Assembly (NCBI GenBank): GCA_965112155.1
Contig: OZ218100.1
DNA length: 64,000 bases
Reading direction: 5' to 3' (one strand)
DNA from: Podarcis liolepis
Taxonomy: Eukaryota
Within the stretch, counting starts at the first letter, position 1; every line of letters starts with the position of its first letter. The translations under genes were made by a program, and so were the position numbers. Shown piece after piece: positions 30,801-40,419 of the stretch. The notes below the pieces were generated by a model. The model was given only the letters and a program-made list of their open reading frames with translations, did not search any database and was not told the DNA's origin.

Positions 30801-33134
30801 GTTTTAAAATAAATATTGGTCTCCATGTATTCCCCCGCCATCAATTGAAATCACTTGCCAAATGTGTTGTGCATATTCCAATCTTGACGTCTTTTAATCA
30901 CTTGCAATCTGTAATCCTCCTCATGTGGGAAGTGCAGGATAGAAATCAAATTCAATCAAAACAAACACAAACAAGTATAAACTTTTAGGCTTTTTGCCGG
31001 TAGTTTATGAACATTCCTGATAGCAGATAATTGTTAGCGATGGGGGAACACGCTTGTCTCAGGGGCATAGCCCACAATTCTCGACCTTTCAGTACCAGTT
31101 AGTGCTGGAAAATGAAGATAATGATTCCTAGTCAATTGGTGTGTCACACAACCCTGCCACCTTTCCTATCCTGCTGTACCAGTTTACAGCAAAAGCATAA
31201 CTATGCCTAACTCAGAAGGAAGTCCTGTTGAACTCAATAGTGCCTACACACGAGTAAGTGGGGATTGGAGTGTGATGCACTGGAAAATCCCAAACAAACC
31301 TAGGGTCCTGGATGCCGTGTGGTCCAGCAGCCACAACTGCCAAAACTGGCTAGAATAATCCCTCCCAGCCATTGAGAACAATTCATCCAAGACTAGATTT
31401 AAATCATGTTTCTTTCATTGACTCACTACTAGGTGGTCTTGCATGTAGGGCAAACTGGTTATAAACAAGCCGATGAGTAAGAAAAGAAGCCTCCATTTAT
31501 TACATTTCAAACTCTTTCCTAAGGCTTGAGGCAGGAAATGGATTTTTTTCATCTGGTTGAAAGGGACCTGGAAAAGCCGCAATGCCTGAGGTATGCTCAT
31601 CCAGCTATGCTTTCTCACGGACAAGCGTTCGATTGTACAGTTTTGTAGCTTTTCGAGAATTTCAAAACCTCTTAACCTGTTTGTTCAAGGATGATAATGG
31701 GGGGGGGGGGGAGTTCATTCAACAAGTGTGCAATTCAACAGATGAAATGGTGTGTAAGTCAACAGGTGTGCACTCTTTCCCCCAAACAGTTGTACATGTG
31801 TAGCGACAGTTTGTGTTCAACGTAACATACAGGCAAGCCTGTTAGAGAGAGAGAAAAAAAATAAATTGAACATATAACCAACCACATCTTGTGTCACCAT
31901 AACAGGGCAGTGGCATGTTCAGAGACCAAGTACATGCTTTCATGTATAGGGTCCAAAGTTCAATATCTGCCCAAAATGGGGGCAGGTGATGGGACATATC
32001 TTGTAGGGGAGGGTGTCAGGCCAATCAACATAGAGAAAATGGGGAACTTGAGAACTTCCAGATGTTGCTGGACTACAGCTCTCCCTCTCGCCAAGTATTG
32101 GCCATGCAGGCTGGGAATTATGGGAGTCCACCAACATCTGGAGAGCCATAAGCTTCCCACCACTGTTTTAAATGTTCTCAAGAACCATTGTCTGTTTTTA
32201 ATACCTTTTCTCAAGGACTGATTCATGGTTATGAGTAATACATTCAGAAATAGGTTAAGTACCATTTACGCACCAGTTTTATATCTATCATCTTCATTAA
32301 AATGTGCATTTCTTTGTAATGCTCCCTGGGACACAATATGCATTTCTTATGTGGTTCTCACTGCTCAGCAAGTTTCCCACTTCTATTCTATATAGACCAC
32401 ACTTATAAAATACCACAGATGTCTATTTCAAAAGGTTACCATTTCTCTCAGTGTATCCATTTTCAAATTAAATGTGACCAACCACTTAGAAATACAAGCA
32501 AGGAAACTTACTTGCATTAATTTAATTGAGAGTAAATAAACAAACAGAACACACGAGTTCAACACAATTCACTCATCACTGAACAGGATTAACAACTTCC
32601 TTCTTCAAGGAATAATGAAGGCAGCATTTTAAAGGGTATCCCCTGGGTATAGCTATAATTTTCAAAATTAGAATATTGGTAAACACTTCTTTTTAAGACC
32701 ATCAATTATTTTCTTGGCACAGCAACACTTCCAAGCATGTAAAGAACCACTGCATTGTGATGGTTCTATTTAAGCATTTCTTTAATTGGATCATTAAATG
32801 CTGTTGTTTTAATATCAATTTTCTTAATGCTACCGGGCAGGTTGGTATCAGACTTTGTGAAATAAGGTCACTTCCCCTCCACAGTCTGCACCTTCTGAAA
32901 AAGCAGGCAAATATGCTTTTCATTACTGAGTAATGGGGTTAAGGGGGAAAAAACAATATAAAATTGGAAAGTGGGATTTTGCCATCTCCTTCCACAAATA
33001 TGTAATGATTCAAGGTTAAGAATGCAATCCTATACTCACTTTCTTGGGAACAGACCCCACTAAACTCAATGAGGTTTAATTCAGAGTGGTGCTCAACTGG
33101 AGTTGTCTCCCTGGCAAGGCCTTCTTGGTGGCAG

Positions 33135-33349
33135 GGCGTGTTCTCCTTCAAAATGAGAGCACGTGTTGCGGTTGGGAGAATACAAGCCACCCTGCTGTTA
33201 CTAGGCAGTTTTGGATAAAGGCAGAATCCTTAAAGGGTTAATTGAGTTACTGGGGAGTTTAGCACGTTGCCAATTTCTGGAGGAGGGCAGAGGCTATAAA
33301 TACAGGTCGCTTACGTCAGGGCGTCCTCTTGGCCTCTGCATTGGATCAC
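33135..33349 (+). repeat. Split direct repeat A1 (215 bp)
   Basis: Matches 39606-39820 except one T/C difference (33342 vs 39813). Confidence 0.97.
33295..33318 (+). promoter_or_regulatory. TATA box (TATAAATA) and downstream CRE-like TTACGTCA in repeat A; duplicated in A2 at ~39766-39789
   Basis: Motif about 50 nt before the end of A; the solo copies have TTTAAATA at the equivalent position. Confidence 0.6.
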
Positions 33350-33549
33350 GGAGCAGATCGTGTCTGGAGCCGGTTGTATTTTAAGCGTATATTTTCGCTG
33401 CTTCTAATTACTGCTTGTTTTCTCTTAAGTCCCCTTCTGCCTTTGTTCCTTCCTCCTTTTGTCTTAATTCCCTCCCACACTCCCTCCCTTTATTTTCCCG
33501 TTTATTTGCCTACCTTTTCCTGAGTTAATTTTAATTGTGTTTAAACAGC

Positions 33550-34130
33550 GTTTTACCGGGAGTGGACTCCGCCCCCCCCCCAGCCCGGGGGAGGCTTTCC
33601 TCCCGGCCTCGGGGAAGCCCCCGCGCTCTTACCGGGCCGCGGCCCACTCTTCCATTCCCCCCCTCCAAGCTCCGTAGTTGCGGAGCGCCCCCGGGGAACC
33701 CTCCTCCTTCCCTCCCACCGCCGCGTGGCCGGCGCTTACCTGGATTCACTGCGTGGGTGGCCGGATTAGGCCCTATTCTCTCCTGGGGGCCGTTACCGCG
33801 TGCGGCGGTCTCCCGGCGTTCCAGGCCGGGCCCGCGCGGCTGCGCCACGGCGCCGAGGGAGCGCTTGCCGGCGGGGTTTCCACAGGCCTCATTTTGAGCG
33901 CTTGAACGGCCCGCCTGTCCCGCGCTAACGCGCAAGGGCTTGCCGGACCCGGGGTGTCGTCGCCGCTGCGGCCTGAGCCCGCTGCGGCCTGGTAACATTT
34001 TTGCTGCGTAATCCCGGTTAGCTCCGCCATTTTCTTTGTGTCTTGCCGGCGTGGTGCTCCCCCTGGTGGCGCTGAGGGGTACTGCGCCTCTGTTGGATTG
34101 ATTGAGGAGCTAGGCCGCACCTCCTTCCTA
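33550..34130. promoter_or_regulatory. CpG island in the Ngaro leader with YY1 (34024-34033) and CTCF (34056-34070) motifs
   Basis: Very high GC/CpG content; CCGCCATTTT; GCTCCCCCTGGTGGC (reverse complement GCCACCAGGGGGAGC). Confidence 0.55.
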
Positions 34131-34285
34131 CCCCCCCTGCTGGCCGTTTGGGTACTGCACCCTGTCTATTTGCTTTATTTAAGCTGGTCAAGCATAATTG
34201 TTGCCTGGTATTGTTTTTTCTTGCCTCTGGGCCGGCTCTGAGGCCTCACAGGTTGGCTCCAGCGCTTAGGAGAGTTTAGTTAGTG

Positions 34286-34286
<1 letters not shown>

Positions 34287-34319
<33 letters not shown>
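34287..34319. repeat. (GATA)n microsatellite inside the Ngaro leader
   Basis: Direct reading. Confidence 0.9.
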
Positions 34320-34525
34320 TAGTTATTTAGACATACCTTTGGGCTAACATTTGGCCAAGAGTTATTATTTATTTATAACTTCTGCATAGATTGCAATTGA
34401 AGAGGGCTACTGAGTAGTAGCTGGTGGTAGGCCCAACAGTGGGTAGTGGTTGGAGGTTGCTAGCGGTTTATCTGCTGTATTGCTGGGAATTTAACTGGTT
34501 TTGATTTTATTTCCTGCTAGCAGGT

Positions 34526-36052
34526 ATGGCTCCAAAGAAAGCTGCTGCTCGCTCCAGCTCTGCTATCACTTCAAAACGGCCTATTAGAGGTCCATCCCAG
34601 GCGCTTCGTTCACCCCCTTCCAGCCAACCAGTGGGGCGAGTGCAATCATTGGTGGAAGGCATGGCCGGTGACCCTGCAGCTTTATCTCGCTTCGCAGCGG
34701 ATTTGGACGCCTTCTTGCAGCATCGTTCCGCCCAACCGTCCACATCTGGAAGGCTGCCCTCCTCAACATTGGTGGCGTCTACGGTTTCATCATCATCTAG
34801 CGAGGATGAGGGGGAGGGATCGTCGCCACAGGGTTTAATTTTGAATCCACAGTTATCCCAGTCCCCTGATGTACCTGCAATTCGGAACCAGCCTCGGAGG
34901 TCGGGCCGCCTCTCCGGGCGGGCCTCCAGAAAAAGTGCCCCTTTGGCCGCATCCACTCGCCGGCGTACGCCCGCCCGGTCTCCCACGGATGGGGCATCCG
35001 CTTCTGGTATCTCACGTGTTCTCTCTATGCAGTCTGTTTCAGTTCCGCCTCAACCGAATCCCGATTCGGAGTCCTCTAACGAAGACAGTCTACCGGTCCC
35101 TGCCAGGAGGTCGCTGGGAGGGAAGCGTCGCCACAAGAGGTCATCCCGAAAGCGTGCAAAGCGGAGGAAGGATGACTCTTCTTCCTCTCTTTCGGGTACG
35201 TCTTCCTCTAGTTCTGACGATGAGGGTAGTCATATGGAACTTTATTGGGGTTTTGGCGAATCGGTTTCAGGGCTTCCTCGGTGGGCTTGGGAGCGCAGGT
35301 CCAACACGCATCGGGCGAAATATGGAGCTGTTCAGGAATGCAGGGATGGCGTGTTGGTTCCTGACGTTAAAGTCTCAACTAACTCGGCCAGGGACATCAT
35401 TCCGGGCTCACATTTGTCATCGAAATTGCGTTCCCGGATATTAAATGGACGTTACGTGGACATGTTCAAACTGGCCCCACCTTCTGAGGAACAAGAGAAG
35501 GGGAGTGTTTCAACCAAAAAACGCTCAGGGGTCTCTGCGGCAGGCAGGACTTTTGAACATTGGCTTGACTCCTTTCAGGTCTTTGCTGGTATAGTTATGG
35601 CAGCCTATCCGCGTAGGTCCCTTCATTTGTTGGTTTATTTATCCATCGTGCGCTCTGCCTTTACCAAGGCTGGGGAAAAAGCTGCGATCAAATATGATGA
35701 GAATTTTAGGCGTCGTGCGGCTAAGATTCCCTCCGCACGCTGGGATCGGAAAGATCTAGATGTGTGGACTACTTACGTGGCTCCGCTTATTGACAAAAAG
35801 GTGCCGGAGCAACAGAAATTGGGTATCTCTCCTTTTAGGCCTGGCCGTCGGTTGCCTTGTTGGGATTTTAACAGGGCTTCTTGTCAGCGTTCAACATGTA
35901 GATTTGCGCACACTTGTGAGAAATGCAATGGATTGCATCCGGCTTCCTCTTGTTTTGGTGGGCGGCGGCCCTTTCGTGGAGGAAAAGGGGGCTCTCAACA
36001 ACCCCCCAAGTCAGTCCCCCCCACACCCTCAACCTCAGGTACAGCAAAATAA
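34526..36052 (+). CDS. gag: Ngaro ORF1, Gag-like protein (508 aa)
   Basis: Ser/Arg-rich N-terminus with a basic NLS-like patch, YDENFRRR core, C-terminal CX7CX4CX3H and CX2CX3HX4C zinc fingers; first AUG after the promoter. Confidence 0.88.
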   Translation: MAPKKAAARSSSAITSKRPIRGPSQALRSPPSSQPVGRVQSLVEGMAGDPAALSRFAADLDAFLQHRSAQPSTSGRLPSSTLVASTVSSSSSEDEGEGSSPQGLILNPQLSQSPDVPAIRNQPRRSGRLSGRASRKSAPLAASTRRRTPARSPTDGASASGISRVLSMQSVSVPPQPNPDSESSNEDSLPVPARRSLGGKRRHKRSSRKRAKRRKDDSSSSLSGTSSSSSDDEGSHMELYWGFGESVSGLPRWAWERRSNTHRAKYGAVQECRDGVLVPDVKVSTNSARDIIPGSHLSSKLRSRILNGRYVDMFKLAPPSEEQEKGSVSTKKRSGVSAAGRTFEHWLDSFQVFAGIVMAAYPRRSLHLLVYLSIVRSAFTKAGEKAAIKYDENFRRRAAKIPSARWDRKDLDVWTTYVAPLIDKKVPEQQKLGISPFRPGRRLPCWDFNRASCQRSTCRFAHTCEKCNGLHPASSCFGGRRPFRGGKGGSQQPPKSVPPTPSTSGTAK

Positions 36053-37658
36053 GGTGCTGACTTCCTTGGCCCAGACTCCCATACGTCTGCCGGCCCTTAA
36101 AAAGTGGCTCAGGTTTTACCCAGATAGGGAGGCCGCTCGTTACCTGAGCGATGGTTTTTCTGTTGGTTTTCGGATTCCAGTAGCCATGCCCCCCGTGGCT
36201 CGGAATTCGGCTAATCAGAAATCAGTTCGTGAATTGCCCGAAATTGCCCGAAAAAAGATCACAAAGGAGGTGGCTATGCATCGGATGGCTGGCCCCTTTT
36301 GTGCCCCTCCATTTCCAAAATTGCATGTTTCCCCATTGGGCATCGTGCCAAAGAAAGCCCCTGGTGAATTCCGTTTGATTCATAATTTATCACACCCTAG
36401 GGGTACTTCAGTTAACGATGTGATTCCTCCAGAGCTTTGCTCAGTTAAGTATGCCTCTCTTGATCACGCGATCAAGATGATTCGAAAATTTGGACCAGCT
36501 GCTTTATTGGCAAAATGCGACATAGAGTCGGCATTCCGTTTGCTGCCGATTCATCCTGAGGATTTTTGGCTGCTCGGTTTCCAGTTTGAGGGAAAATACT
36601 ATTTTGACAAAGCCATGCCCATGGGTTGTTCAATAGCGTGCGCAGCTTTTGAATCTTTCAGCACCTTTTTGGAATGGGCCCTCAAGTTGAAAACCGGGTT
36701 GGATGGGGTTACTCATTATTTGGATGATTTTTTATTGGCTTCTGATTGTAATACTGACAATTGCTCGGTTCTGTTGCGTGCTTTAGCTGCCCTTACTGAG
36801 GAAATAGGGGTCCCGTTAGCGGCGGAAAAGACTGAGGGTCCCTCGACTCAGCTTACGTATTTGGGTATCCTTTTGGATACGGTGTCTCAAACTTCCAGCT
36901 TGCCTAAGGATAAGCTGGTGGCTTTAAAAAAGGTTATAGAGGAATTGCTTCCCTTAAAGAAGGTGTCCCTACTGCAAATCCAATCGCTGTTAGGTCACCT
37001 GAATTTTGCCTGTAGGGTGGTGGCCCCGGGTCGCCCCTTTTGCTCTCGTTTGGCTCGCCTCACGGTGGGCTTGAAGGCCCCGCATCATCGTGTCCGTCTT
37101 TCTAGGGAGGTGAGGGCTGATCTCAGCATATGGCTTGAATTTTTGGAGGAATTCAATGGGGTATCGCTATGGCAAGACACTTTGAACTTGCAGAACGATT
37201 TTCAGGTGCATTCAGACGCAGCAGGGTCCCAAGGTTTTGGCCTATATTGGATGGGCAGGTGGTGTGCCAAGCGCTGGCCTCTTGATTGGCAGGGAACAGC
37301 CATTACGCGGGACCTAACTTTTCTTGAGTTCTTTCCCATTGCAGTGGCAGTGCACTTGTGGGTCGAAGAGTTCAGGGACCGACGCGTCTGCTTCTGGACT
37401 GATAACCAGGCGGTGGTGAATGTGCTGGCCAAGCTGTCGTCCCGCTCTCCTAGGGTGTCGGCCCTTTTGCGGGCTTTTGTTTTACATTGTTTACGTTATA
37501 ACATAGTGTTTTCTGCTCGTTTTGTTCCGGGGGTGTCTAACGAAATTGCCGATGCTCTGTCCCGTTTTCAGATGGAGCGGTTCAGACTTCTGGTTCCAGA
37601 GGCTCGGAAACGTCCGGAATGTTTCCCGGATCATCTCTGGAGCCTTGGCAGGAGCTAG
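35760..37658 (+). CDS. pol: Ngaro ORF2, reverse transcriptase/RNase H (true start uncertain)
   Basis: RT motifs PKK..G.FRLIHNLS, KCDIESAF, MPMG, YLDDF; RNase H motifs SDAAGS.G.G, LEFFP, TDNQ, NEIADALSR. Confidence 0.95.
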   Translation: MCGLLTWLRLLTKRCRSNRNWVSLLLGLAVGCLVGILTGLLVSVQHVDLRTLVRNAMDCIRLPLVLVGGGPFVEEKGALNNPPSQSPPHPQPQVQQNKVLTSLAQTPIRLPALKKWLRFYPDREAARYLSDGFSVGFRIPVAMPPVARNSANQKSVRELPEIARKKITKEVAMHRMAGPFCAPPFPKLHVSPLGIVPKKAPGEFRLIHNLSHPRGTSVNDVIPPELCSVKYASLDHAIKMIRKFGPAALLAKCDIESAFRLLPIHPEDFWLLGFQFEGKYYFDKAMPMGCSIACAAFESFSTFLEWALKLKTGLDGVTHYLDDFLLASDCNTDNCSVLLRALAALTEEIGVPLAAEKTEGPSTQLTYLGILLDTVSQTSSLPKDKLVALKKVIEELLPLKKVSLLQIQSLLGHLNFACRVVAPGRPFCSRLARLTVGLKAPHHRVRLSREVRADLSIWLEFLEEFNGVSLWQDTLNLQNDFQVHSDAAGSQGFGLYWMGRWCAKRWPLDWQGTAITRDLTFLEFFPIAVAVHLWVEEFRDRRVCFWTDNQAVVNVLAKLSSRSPRVSALLRAFVLHCLRYNIVFSARFVPGVSNEIADALSRFQMERFRLLVPEARKRPECFPDHLWSLGRS

Positions 37659-38542
37659 TTTTTCAGGGAGTAATGGCTTCTATTTCCCCTTCTACTCTCA
37701 GGTCATACACCAAAGCATGGACTGATTTTTTGTCCTTTACATATCAGCCAGCCGGGGAGCAAAGGTGGACTTCCCCCTCCACTTCTCAGGTGCTAAAATA
37801 TTTGGCGCACCTGTTTCAGTTGGGACGTGCAGCTAAGACGCTAAGAATTCAGGCAGCTGCTATTGCCTTTTTCTGCAAAGCTTATTTCGACAAAGATCCT
37901 TGCGCTAAGTTTGCCGTGCGTAAGGCCCTGGAGGGATGGGGTAGGCTTTGTCCTTCCCAGCCAGCTACTAGGCACCCTATCTCATATGATTTGCTGTGCA
38001 AGATGCGCAAAGAGTTGAGGAAGGTTTGCTGGTCCAGGTATGAGGCTCGCCTTTTTTCTGCGGCCTTTTCTATTGCTTTCTTCGGAGCACTAAGGGTGGG
38101 TGAGCTCGTATGGGAGGAGCACAAAAATGGCCGTTCTAGGGGATTATTGCTTCAGGATGCGCAGCTATCTCCGGATGAGCTGAGACTCCTCATTAGGAAC
38201 TCAAAAACGGATCAGGGTGGAAGGGGAGCCCTCATTCGTCTCCCGGCTACAAGGGAGGTGGGACCGTGTCCGGTCAAAGATGTCAGGAAGTACTTGTCCA
38301 TCCGGGCCCCGGGGGAAGGTCCACTGTTGCAGCATGAAGATGGGTCGCCTCTGTCTAGGCGACAGTTTGCAAGGGTGATGCGGAAGGCCATTGCGGCTTG
38401 TGGTGATTCTGCTAGTGGTTTTGCCCCACACTCTTTCAGGATTGGGGCTGCCACGACGGCAGCGCATTGGGGCCTGTCTGCAGGCAGAATAAAGAATTTG
38501 GGTCGCTGGAAGTCGAACGCGTTTCGAGGCTATGTTCGCTAA
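37619..38542 (+). CDS. Ngaro ORF3, tyrosine recombinase
   Basis: Complete catalytic set: R (ALRVGEL), K (SKTDQ), HxxR (HSFRIG), W (GRW), Y (FRGYVR). Confidence 0.95.
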   Translation: MFPGSSLEPWQELVFQGVMASISPSTLRSYTKAWTDFLSFTYQPAGEQRWTSPSTSQVLKYLAHLFQLGRAAKTLRIQAAAIAFFCKAYFDKDPCAKFAVRKALEGWGRLCPSQPATRHPISYDLLCKMRKELRKVCWSRYEARLFSAAFSIAFFGALRVGELVWEEHKNGRSRGLLLQDAQLSPDELRLLIRNSKTDQGGRGALIRLPATREVGPCPVKDVRKYLSIRAPGEGPLLQHEDGSPLSRRQFARVMRKAIAACGDSASGFAPHSFRIGAATTAAHWGLSAGRIKNLGRWKSNAFRGYVR

Positions 38543-38576
38543 CATGATGTTTTTTGTATTTTGTTGTCTATACCAG

Positions 38577-39151
38577 GTTTAGCAGCCGTACGCATATGGA
38601 TGGTGGGGCACAGTATCGTACATTGGGCCGGCGTTGGAGCCAGGCAGCTCAGATTGGGACCAGGTCTTGGCCTTCCTCCTCACGTGCACGTATCTTGGCT
38701 GGCCAGAAGGGGAATGTCCTGGACAGAGTTTCTGCCACTGATTCGTAGGCAGCTGGCTGAGAAAGGGTCGCCCACGGCCATCGTGGTGCAGCTGGGTGAG
38801 AATGACCTGGTTTCTATGGACTGTGCTTCGTTACGTGCAGCTATCCTGGGTGATCTTGAAGTGCTGCGAGCAATGGTGCCGGCAGCAAAAATTTTCTGGT
38901 CAAAGCTTTTGCAAAGGCGCAGTTGGAGAGGCAGTCGTTGCCCAACTGCCACCGAAAGGGCTAGGAAGCGGATCAATTCGGCGGTCTCAAAAAAGGTTTT
39001 TGAGTTGGGAGGTGACGTGATTTCCCATCCTGAGATTCTGGCCAGGGATGAATCACTTTTCAGAGATGATGGGGTGCATCTTTCAGCTTTAGGGAACAAG
39101 GCGTGGCTGGGTGCTGTGGTGGCTAAGCTAAGGTCTTGGCTGGGTTTGTGA
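38577..39151 (+). CDS. Ngaro ORF4, SGNH/GDSL hydrolase (esterase), probably entered through a splice acceptor at 38576/38577
   Basis: Block I WMVGHSI, block II RRG, block III QLGEND, block V DGVH; open to TGA at 39149-39151; no AUG upstream of the block I strand. Confidence 0.85.
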
Positions 39152-39179
39152 GTGGTTTGGCGGCGAGCGTAGGGCTCCA

Positions 39180-39605
39180 TTGGCGGTTAGGCATTGGTTA
39201 AAATTGGTTGGTCGAGGGGTAAGTGCCTACCCCTCCAATGGTGGTGTGAAAAAGGGAATTCCGTTAAAGGAATCCAGGGGCTTGCCATTCATTCGTCCTT
39301 GTCCCCGGAGTCGGACCTGGGCCGTGCAAGCCCCACAGGAACATGAGGGTGAGAGGTGTGGGACTGTTACCCAGCTTCACCTTCTCACCCAATACTTGTT
39401 TCCCAGGCTGGCTTCCGCTGGAATCCGGAAGGCCAGCCCTGTCCATGGGCGAGGACAGATAGTCATAACCAATGCCTAAGCAACCACTCACGTATTTGTA
39501 TTTTAATAAAGTTGTGGCCAAAATCATGCCAAAAACCTTAAACAAAATTAACGTGTGAAGTGTGAATTATTTGGTGAGGGTGGCTTTGTGGGACTCAACA
39601 CGCAA
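39180..39605 (+). repeat. Split direct repeat B1 (426 bp)
   Basis: Identical by eye to 39994-40419 (offset 814). Confidence 0.97.
39505..39510 (+). terminator. Polyadenylation signal AATAAA in B1; second copy at 40319-40324 in B2
   Basis: AATAAAGTTGTGGCCAAA is conserved in all four B copies and followed by a GT-rich tract. Confidence 0.6.
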
Positions 39606-39820
39606 GGCGTGTTCTCCTTCAAAATGAGAGCACGTGTTGCGGTTGGGAGAATACAAGCCACCCTGCTGTTACTAGGCAGTTTTGGATAAAGGCAGAATCC
39701 TTAAAGGGTTAATTGAGTTACTGGGGAGTTTAGCACGTTGCCAATTTCTGGAGGAGGGCAGAGGCTATAAATACAGGTCGCTTACGTCAGGGCGTCCTCT
39801 TGGCCTCTGCATCGGATCAC
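39606..39820 (+). repeat. Split direct repeat A2
   Basis: Copy of 33135-33349. Confidence 0.97.
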
Positions 39821-39993
39821 CCGCCCACCCTCCCTTTTATAAGGGGGGGTTTCTGGTTATTTGACCTTGCTATGCCTGTCATGGGGTCGTCCGCCTTGGT
39901 GCGGGGGCCTGGTAGGAATTTACCATTTGGCTGATTGGCTGGTGCCATTTGGGTTTCGCCTACTGCGTAGCAAATAAGTCACAACTTGTAAGG

Positions 39994-40419
39994 TTGGCGG
40001 TTAGGCATTGGTTAAAATTGGTTGGTCGAGGGGTAAGTGCCTACCCCTCCAATGGTGGTGTGAAAAAGGGAATTCCGTTAAAGGAATCCAGGGGCTTGCC
40101 ATTCATTCGTCCTTGTCCCCGGAGTCGGACCTGGGCCGTGCAAGCCCCACAGGAACATGAGGGTGAGAGGTGTGGGACTGTTACCCAGCTTCACCTTCTC
40201 ACCCAATACTTGTTTCCCAGGCTGGCTTCCGCTGGAATCCGGAAGGCCAGCCCTGTCCATGGGCGAGGACAGATAGTCATAACCAATGCCTAAGCAACCA
40301 CTCACGTATTTGTATTTTAATAAAGTTGTGGCCAAAATCATGCCAAAAACCTTAAACAAAATTAACGTGTGAAGTGTGAATTATTTGGTGAGGGTGGCTT
40401 TGTGGGACTCAACACGCAA
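39994..40419 (+). repeat. Split direct repeat B2
   Basis: Copy of 39180-39605. Confidence 0.97.

Follow-up and report, generated by a model that had tools for sequence, protein, structure and literature searches.

A 64,000-nucleotide stretch of the lizard Podarcis liolepis (contig OZ218100.1 of assembly GCA_965112155.1), referred to here as the window, carries a Ngaro retrotransposon whose open reading frames (ORFs) encode Gag, a reverse transcriptase/RNase H (pol), a tyrosine recombinase (YR) and an SGNH hydrolase or esterase (ORF4). It is probable that a 5' splice site in the middle of gag (35195/35196) is joined, in part of the transcripts, to the acceptor at 38576/38577, giving a Gag(1-223)-SGNH protein, and to a second acceptor at 37571/37572 for the recombinase. 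The case is built on gene models, on the conservation of the junctions and on splice signals, from which we infer that this splice occurs in P. liolepis. The initial annotation of the window had proposed a splice from the end of gag into 38577, producing a Gag-esterase fusion. Its core, namely a phase-1 splice into 38576/38577 that gives the esterase a Gag-derived N terminus and skips pol and YR, is very probably right, being supported by annotated lacertid fusion proteins, by the conserved junction and by the splice signals. The parts of the predicted esterase mRNA are as follows.

34526-35195, plus strand: coding part of exon 1, with gag codons 1-223 and the G of the junction Gly codon
35193-35201, plus strand: supported 5' splice site CGG/GTACGT, exon end at 35195, phase 1, dividing a Gly codon as G/GT
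35196-38576, plus strand: predicted intron of 3381 nt, spanning the gag core, pol and YR, deduced from the junctions of database models and the GT..AG ends
38539-38576, plus strand: esterase 3' splice signals, with CTAAC at 38539-38543, an AG-free T-rich tract and CCAG at 38573-38576
38577-39151, plus strand: esterase exon, with the remaining two bases of the Gly codon, 190 SGNH codons and the stop

Annotated lacertid proteins join Gag to the esterase in mid-gag

In Podarcis muralis, P. raffonei, P. lilfordi and Zootoca vivipara, there are more than 20 annotated proteins in which the esterase directly follows Gag residues 1-223, with the junction ...SSS-x-S-G/LAAVRIWMVGHS. When the window segments 34526-35195 and 38577-39148 are joined, exactly 414 codons are obtained, which equals the length of five P. 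muralis models; for this joined product only the length was computed, the fusion being otherwise represented by natural database proteins. The fusion models listed here consist of Gag 1-223 followed by SGNH 1-190 and share the junction ...S-G/(L/R/Q/P)A.VRIW.VGHS.

P0026, P0029, P0031, P0034: 414 residues
P0033, P0037, P0038: 413 residues; P0044, P0045: 412 residues
P0043, P0325 (P. raffonei / P. muralis); P0040 (P. lilfordi)
P0053, P0054, P0064 (Zootoca vivipara)

P0068 of Zootoca has the identical build with another junction (...EDDS/EKLVNIW), and the Gag search, besides full-length Gag proteins, also returned fusion versions of 369 and 370 residues that begin at an internal Met. As seen in the alignment of 20 models, the same junction is preserved across several P. 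muralis families that are only 50-80% identical to one another, and the window Gag is 60-72% identical to P0026, P0029 and P0031 over residues 1-223. At the Zootoca locus LOC132592812, isoform X1 (the fusion, 461 residues) and isoform X2 (Gag, 438 residues) share 149 identical residues ending in ...TTSG and differ beyond them.

The residues ...DDSSSSLSG/TSSSS of the window Gag place the donor at 35195/35196, and GT..AG intron ends arise only with a phase-1 cut at this position. In 22 of 22 Gag homologues, Gly is followed here by Thr, Met or Ser, all of which are compatible with G/GTA; the conservation of donors and acceptors across the relatives was read from proteins, not from nucleotides. 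When the 356 GT sites of the element are scored by a nine-position consensus count, the site at 35195 reaches 7 of 9, and only 8 sites are as good. Just before the donor, a tandem duplication of about 55 residues (the EDSLPVPAR...KRAKRRR...SSSY unit) is seen in the Podarcis Gag proteins P0005-P0009 (560-565 residues) and in the fusion P0030 (471 residues), with the G-T donor residues kept in the second copy only.

The donor at the end of gag is not supported

The donor first proposed for this splice is the following site.

36036-36044, plus strand: gag-end candidate donor CAG/GTACAG, phase 1, use not supported

The site is present as described, cut at 36038/36039 in phase 1 and four gag codons before the stop, and its joining to 38577 leaves 695 codons open (...PSTS-G-LAAVRIWMVGHS), as had been calculated for a hydrolase on the complete Gag. 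It is nevertheless highly improbable that this full-length Gag-SGNH protein of about 695 residues is made. The CAG/GTA context scores 6 of 9 and lacks a G at +5, and 49 of the 356 GT sites are equal or better; since gag has 35 phase-1 GT sites, the matching phase is no better than chance. In contrast with the mid-gag site, Gly-Thr is not conserved among the Gag C termini at the protein level: at least 7 of 20 Gag homologues have another residue in place of the Gly, and they end in ...SAAGK, ...PAAGK, ...PSAGK, ...AASGK, ...TAPGK, ...AGASK and ...ASTSK. No protein combining the C-terminal half of Gag with the SGNH domain was returned, either by the Gag search, which admitted lengths of 279-889 residues, or by a length-unrestricted HMMER search of 1.84 billion representatives. 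The site is also at least as acceptor-like as it is donor-like: the segment 36016-36041 (16 of 20 upstream pyrimidines, CAG/G) is one of the element's strongest acceptor-like sequences. Position 36039 begins a codon of the pol frame (phase 0), a mismatch with the phase-1 gag donor.

The caveat already attached to the gag-end site, that it was weak and that another donor might lie upstream, is in agreement with the mid-gag donor at 35195. The supported product has 414 residues, and the predicted fusion is without the conserved Gag core and the zinc fingers, so that it does not put the hydrolase on a complete Gag.

The esterase acceptor and the start of ORF4

The signals described upstream of the esterase are found where they had been placed. 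The branch point GCTAAC lies at 38538-38543, overlapping the YR stop codon TAA (38540-38542), and is followed by a T-rich tract and by CCAG/G at 38576/38577, in phase 1 of ORF4, with 34 nt free of AG. The CTAAC pentamer occurs seven times in the element, and an AG follows within 5-12 nt of five of these. A long AG-free stretch is found only after the pentamers at 37537 and 38539, where the first AG, 31 and 34 nt past the branch A, respectively, is exactly the YR and the ORF4 acceptor. The ORF4 acceptor signal is better than chance.

The protein data place the boundary at the same point. In the five unspliced ORF4 readings P0049, P0052, P0062, P0063 and P0125, the only common feature upstream of the junction Gly is a Phe-, Leu- and Cys-rich translation of the T-tract, and protein conservation begins exactly at this Gly. 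Related genomic copies have 2-nt and 4-nt deletions at 38553-38558, and the T-rich tract is therefore non-coding. These observations bear on read-through of the YR stop, by which a YR-SGNH fusion would be made without splicing. The window element has only the stop TAA (38540-38542) between YR and ORF4, which here share a frame, and a few database ORFs (P0125, P0069, P0117 and P0165) run from the YR C terminus into the SGNH domain. However, the indels between the stop and the acceptor mean that related copies do not preserve this frame relation, the 11 codons from the stop to the acceptor are wholly unconserved, and most lacertid models use the gag donor, so that read-through deserves very little credence.

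A further alternative is a stand-alone ORF4 protein, translated by internal initiation or re-initiation, either at the ATG at 38600 or without an AUG, for example at TTG 38561.

38561-39151, plus strand: ORF4, SGNH hydrolase, divergent GDSL/SGNH member
38600-38602, plus strand: sole in-frame ATG of ORF4, inside β-strand 1 (IW-M-VGHS)

The claim that ORF4 has no AUG ahead of its first catalytic strand holds in substance, the one in-frame ATG being located inside this strand. In the AlphaFold (AF2) model of the homologue P0026, the strand is formed by residues 228-234 (VRTWMVG), with the Met at 232, and the SGNH domain begins three residues past the junction. The Met is present in many relatives, as internal initiation would have it, but in many others it is Leu or Ile (RIWLVGHS, RIWIVGHS). 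A Met that lies in the middle of strand 1 and is so often replaced is not a credible start: a protein beginning there would be without half of its first core strand. Three ORFs and over 4 kb of sequence also separate the ATG from the 5' end. A stand-alone ORF4 protein is accordingly judged very unlikely, and the splice from mid-gag is preferred as the source of the start codon.

A second acceptor probably serves the recombinase

The other CTAAC followed by a long AG-free stretch belongs to an acceptor with the same phase.

37537-37572, plus strand: YR acceptor signals, with CTAAC at 37537-37541 and TTTTCAG/AT at 37571/37572, phase 1, where G + AT gives Asp

The YR ATG at 37619 lies 48 nt past this acceptor and is not conserved. 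Searches with YR find models joining the Gag N terminus to YR in P. muralis, Zootoca, Anolis, Hemicordylus and Pristimantis frogs. The P. muralis model P0229 has 499 residues and its earlier version P0337 has 544; their junction ...SSSST/DGVVQVPGSRG maps to 37571/37572 of the window, which continues as DGAVQTSGSRG, and the junction of P0216 also matches. The predicted Gag(1-223)-recombinase product of the window has 546 codons, compared with the 544 residues of P0337. At the Zootoca locus LOC118082278, isoforms X1 (YR, 533 residues) and X2 (SGNH, 397 residues) have 207 residues in common, beyond which X1 continues as S/DGPLPL and X2 as S/EKLVNIW. The occurrence of such Gag-N fusions to YR in Anolis, Hemicordylus and Pristimantis suggests that this arrangement is old. 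A site at 37666, upstream of the YR core, resembles an acceptor but was rejected, as it is in phase 0 and has AGs upstream.

Around the YR acceptor, over 37230-37627 (core 37518-37585), three DNA runs give a summed contig depth 10-30 times that of neighboring bins, and loose contig ends are found at 37518 and 37585 in all three, which points to a piece of about 68 nt that is common to much more abundant repeats of these genomes. This piece (37518-37585) encodes the NEIADALSRFQ motif of the RNase H C terminus and contains the YR branch point and acceptor.

Are the fusion models annotation artefacts?

The strongest challenge to these junctions is that the fusion models may be artefacts of annotation, either ab initio or propagated by homology, with no functional splice and with ORF4 either unexpressed or expressed by another route. 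Several findings weigh against splicing from the mid-gag donor, and some of them speak directly for such artefacts. There is no direct RNA evidence: among the sequencing runs on record no RNA run was found to contain the element, RNA reads of the junction were not seen, and one possible RNA run yielded almost nothing. The six runs that contain the element gave only short, genomic-looking contigs. In four runs, the contigs have no joint of 35195 with 38577, of 35195 with 37572 or of 36038 with 38577, and thus provide neither RNA support nor processed DNA copies. Among the Logan/ENA contigs, none encoding a contiguous fusion was found; the candidates P0052, P0062, P0063 and P0327-P0329 were rejected as unspliced ORF4 readings, and P0112 was rejected as it looks like another family, with a coiled-coil-like N terminus. 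By a crude scoring, the two acceptors rank just 12th to 20th among the 367 AG sites. Most of the gene models were produced by a single pipeline (NCBI Gnomon), which as a rule asks for transcript support before alternative isoforms are annotated, and the P. lilfordi model was rejected as independent support, its pipeline having taken P. muralis proteins as evidence. Finally, P0046, P0048, P0050 and P0051 join inner pieces of YR to the esterase acceptor, by which the choice of donor in the models can be seen to vary or to be artefactual. The use of the same acceptor by these inner-YR joins means that the acceptor is more firmly supported than any single donor. The models with inner recombinase and the esterase acceptor (P0046, P0048, P0050, P0051, P0069 and P0070) may reflect YR-internal donors or modeling on 5'-truncated copies.

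The artefact explanation is considered unlikely. The same junction is found in families that are only 45-60% identical, and the window, which played no part in the making of the models, has a GT..AG pair at exactly these positions. Alternative isoforms are annotated at single loci. The boundary of conservation at the acceptor is sharp, and the combination of a branch point with an AG-free zone is found only at the two acceptors. The invariant catalytic motifs of ORF4 imply that it is translated.

It is therefore the joining of the mid-gag donor to two acceptors that is preferred, and the following scheme is proposed. The element would be transcribed as a single RNA, and the sub-optimal 5' splice site at 35195/35196 would be used by part of the transcripts, joined to either phase-1 acceptor. 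The mRNA with 35195 joined to 38577 would have, as its first ORF, Gag(1-223)-Gly-SGNH esterase of 414 residues, and the mRNA with 35195 joined to 37572 would encode Gag(1-223)-Asp-recombinase of 546 residues. The unspliced RNA would code for Gag (and pol) and would be the template for reverse transcription. In this way, the recombinase and the esterase, both without a conserved start codon of their own, would obtain the same N-terminal module.

The SGNH domain and the shared N-terminal module

The catalytic blocks of ORF4 (GHS in block I, GEND in block III and DGVH in block V) are invariant in 19-20 relatives, as expected for a protein that is translated. The Pfam model Lipase_GDSL_2 matches ORF4 with 28.7 bits (E 2e-6), below the cut-off of 32.9 bits, and ORF4 is a sequence-divergent member; a sequence search of Protein Data Bank chains with ORF4 gave nothing significant. 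In the AF2 model of P0026, residues 225-414 have pLDDT values above 90 and adopt the α/β/α SGNH fold. When this domain is compared by Foldseek, TesA, GDSL lipases and platelet-activating factor acetylhydrolase (PAF-AH) are found with TM scores of 0.66-0.76, normalized by target; the top matches are bacterial TesA-like enzymes and PAF-AH. By analogy with the esterase of LINE ORF1 proteins, it may act on a lipid or acyl-ester substrate.

The shared module (Gag 1-223) is mostly disordered in the same model, apart from a helical hairpin around residues 35-68; the disordered part includes a long Ser/Arg-rich region. A conserved cluster, EDSLPVPAR-x-S-GGKRR...RKRAKRRK, is found directly upstream of the donor, and the window gag has the basic cluster KRRHKRSSRKRAKRRK just before it. 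This basic cluster appears similar to a nuclear localization signal, and it is possible that the module carries a signal for nuclear import or for association with Gag.

The Ngaro element

The element is a Ngaro element, that is, a YR retrotransposon of the order DIRS, with a reverse transcriptase/RNase H ORF, a YR and split direct repeats, and with no methyltransferase. In the Pfam search of pol, RVT_1 is the sole match and a methyltransferase domain is absent, which separates Ngaro from DIRS and PAT. The repeats have the order A1 ... B1 A2 B2, as expected for Ngaro, and this is the one Ngaro copy of the window.

33131-40293, plus strand: whole Ngaro element, four ORFs and split direct repeats, described as very young
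33131-33349 and 39602-39820: repeats A1 and A2, 219 nt each, 99% identical
39180-39479 and 39994-40293: repeats B1 and B2, 300 nt each, 100% identical
34526-36052, plus strand: gag, 508 residues, no Pfam match
35760-37658, plus strand: pol, reverse transcriptase/RNase H ORF, RVT_1 with E 7e-13
37619-38542, plus strand: YR, weak matches to Phage_integrase and to a SAM-like domain

YR has 1008 homologues, many of which are labeled as integrase/recombinase XerD homolog, and the closest protein relatives of the element are those of lacertid lizards, at identities of up to 80-85%. The pol frame is +1 relative to gag. Near the C terminus of Gag (35860-35960), a CCCH-type finger, CWDFNRASCQRSTCRFAH, is followed by a CCHC-like knuckle, CEKCNGLHPASSC, and neither is in the spliced fusion proteins. 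Between the repeats B1 and A2, 26 nt past the former, an AATAAA at 39505-39510 may be the poly(A) signal of these transcripts.

Comparison with known systems and significance

We know of no demonstration of how YR retrotransposons express overlapping ORFs that are without start codons. Ngaro elements with a fourth, hydrolase ORF have been described, including DIRS-53_XT and DIRS-54_XT of Xenopus (Goodwin and Poulter 2004, as cited in PMC9210276 and PMC7192593). The window element resembles these elements, as presented by the citing papers, in its gag, reverse transcriptase/RNase H and YR, in the SGNH ORF after YR and in the split repeats A1...B1-A2-B2, and in both cases the function of the hydrolase is unproven. 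It differs in that the accounts available through those papers are of four ORFs in overlapping frames and are silent on splicing, whereas here the hydrolase is the second exon of a predicted Gag(N)-fusion mRNA. A literature search that did not include Goodwin and Poulter 2004 or Poulter and Butler 2015 found no published account of splicing in Ngaro, nor of such a two-acceptor scheme in YR retrotransposons.

The proposed arrangement can be compared with the sub-genomic mRNAs of avian retroviruses, where one early 5' splice site serves several acceptors and the downstream protein takes the start codon and N terminus of gag. For the env and src mRNAs of avian leukosis/sarcoma viruses, the donor is inside gag, and the first six Gag codons are carried over. 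In both systems, splicing must stay incomplete to retain genomic RNA. In the element of the window, however, a conserved module of 223 Gag codons (44% of Gag) would be transferred rather than six codons, and the recipients would be the recombinase and the esterase rather than an envelope protein. A further parallel is found in Ty1/copia elements (Drosophila copia; Arabidopsis, PMC5580714), which make a spliced sub-genomic gag RNA: there, alternative splicing sets the ratio of the proteins, as it would in the Ngaro element. The splicing of copia removes pol for more Gag and creates no new fusion proteins.

For the esterase itself, the comparison is with the esterase-type ORF1 proteins of CR1/L2 LINEs. 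The ORF1 protein esterase of ZfL2-1 is catalytically active and binds negatively charged phospholipids, and a lipid or membrane role has been suggested for it (Schneider et al. 2013, PMC3905857). Both have an SGNH esterase C-terminal to a part that is multimerizing or targeting. The LINE protein has its coiled coil and esterase in one uninterrupted ORF1 of a non-LTR element; the esterase of the window is encoded by a separate 3' ORF of a YR retrotransposon and would be joined by splicing to a module that also goes to the recombinase. The window protein is thus not a LINE esterase-type ORF1 protein, given the YR element and the separate 3' ORF.

The broader view, toward which we lean by a modest degree, is that in tetrapod Ngaro elements one mid-gag donor acts as a hub, by which a common Gag N-terminal module is grafted onto the recombinase and the esterase; this would supply their start codons, set their ratios and co-target them to the Gag particle or the nucleus, in a manner comparable to Gag-Pol frameshifting. 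If true, the conserved splice would explain how the recombinase and the esterase are translated and would suggest a route by which they reach the particle or the nucleus. The Ngaro esterase would then be comparable to the lipid-binding esterase ORF1 proteins of L2/CR1 LINEs, the same architecture having been reached by another route. It would also follow that accounts of Ngaro ORF expression by frame overlap or frameshifting have been mistaken, and that hundreds of lizard entries named "uncharacterized protein LOC..." are isoforms of this kind, which would matter for annotation.

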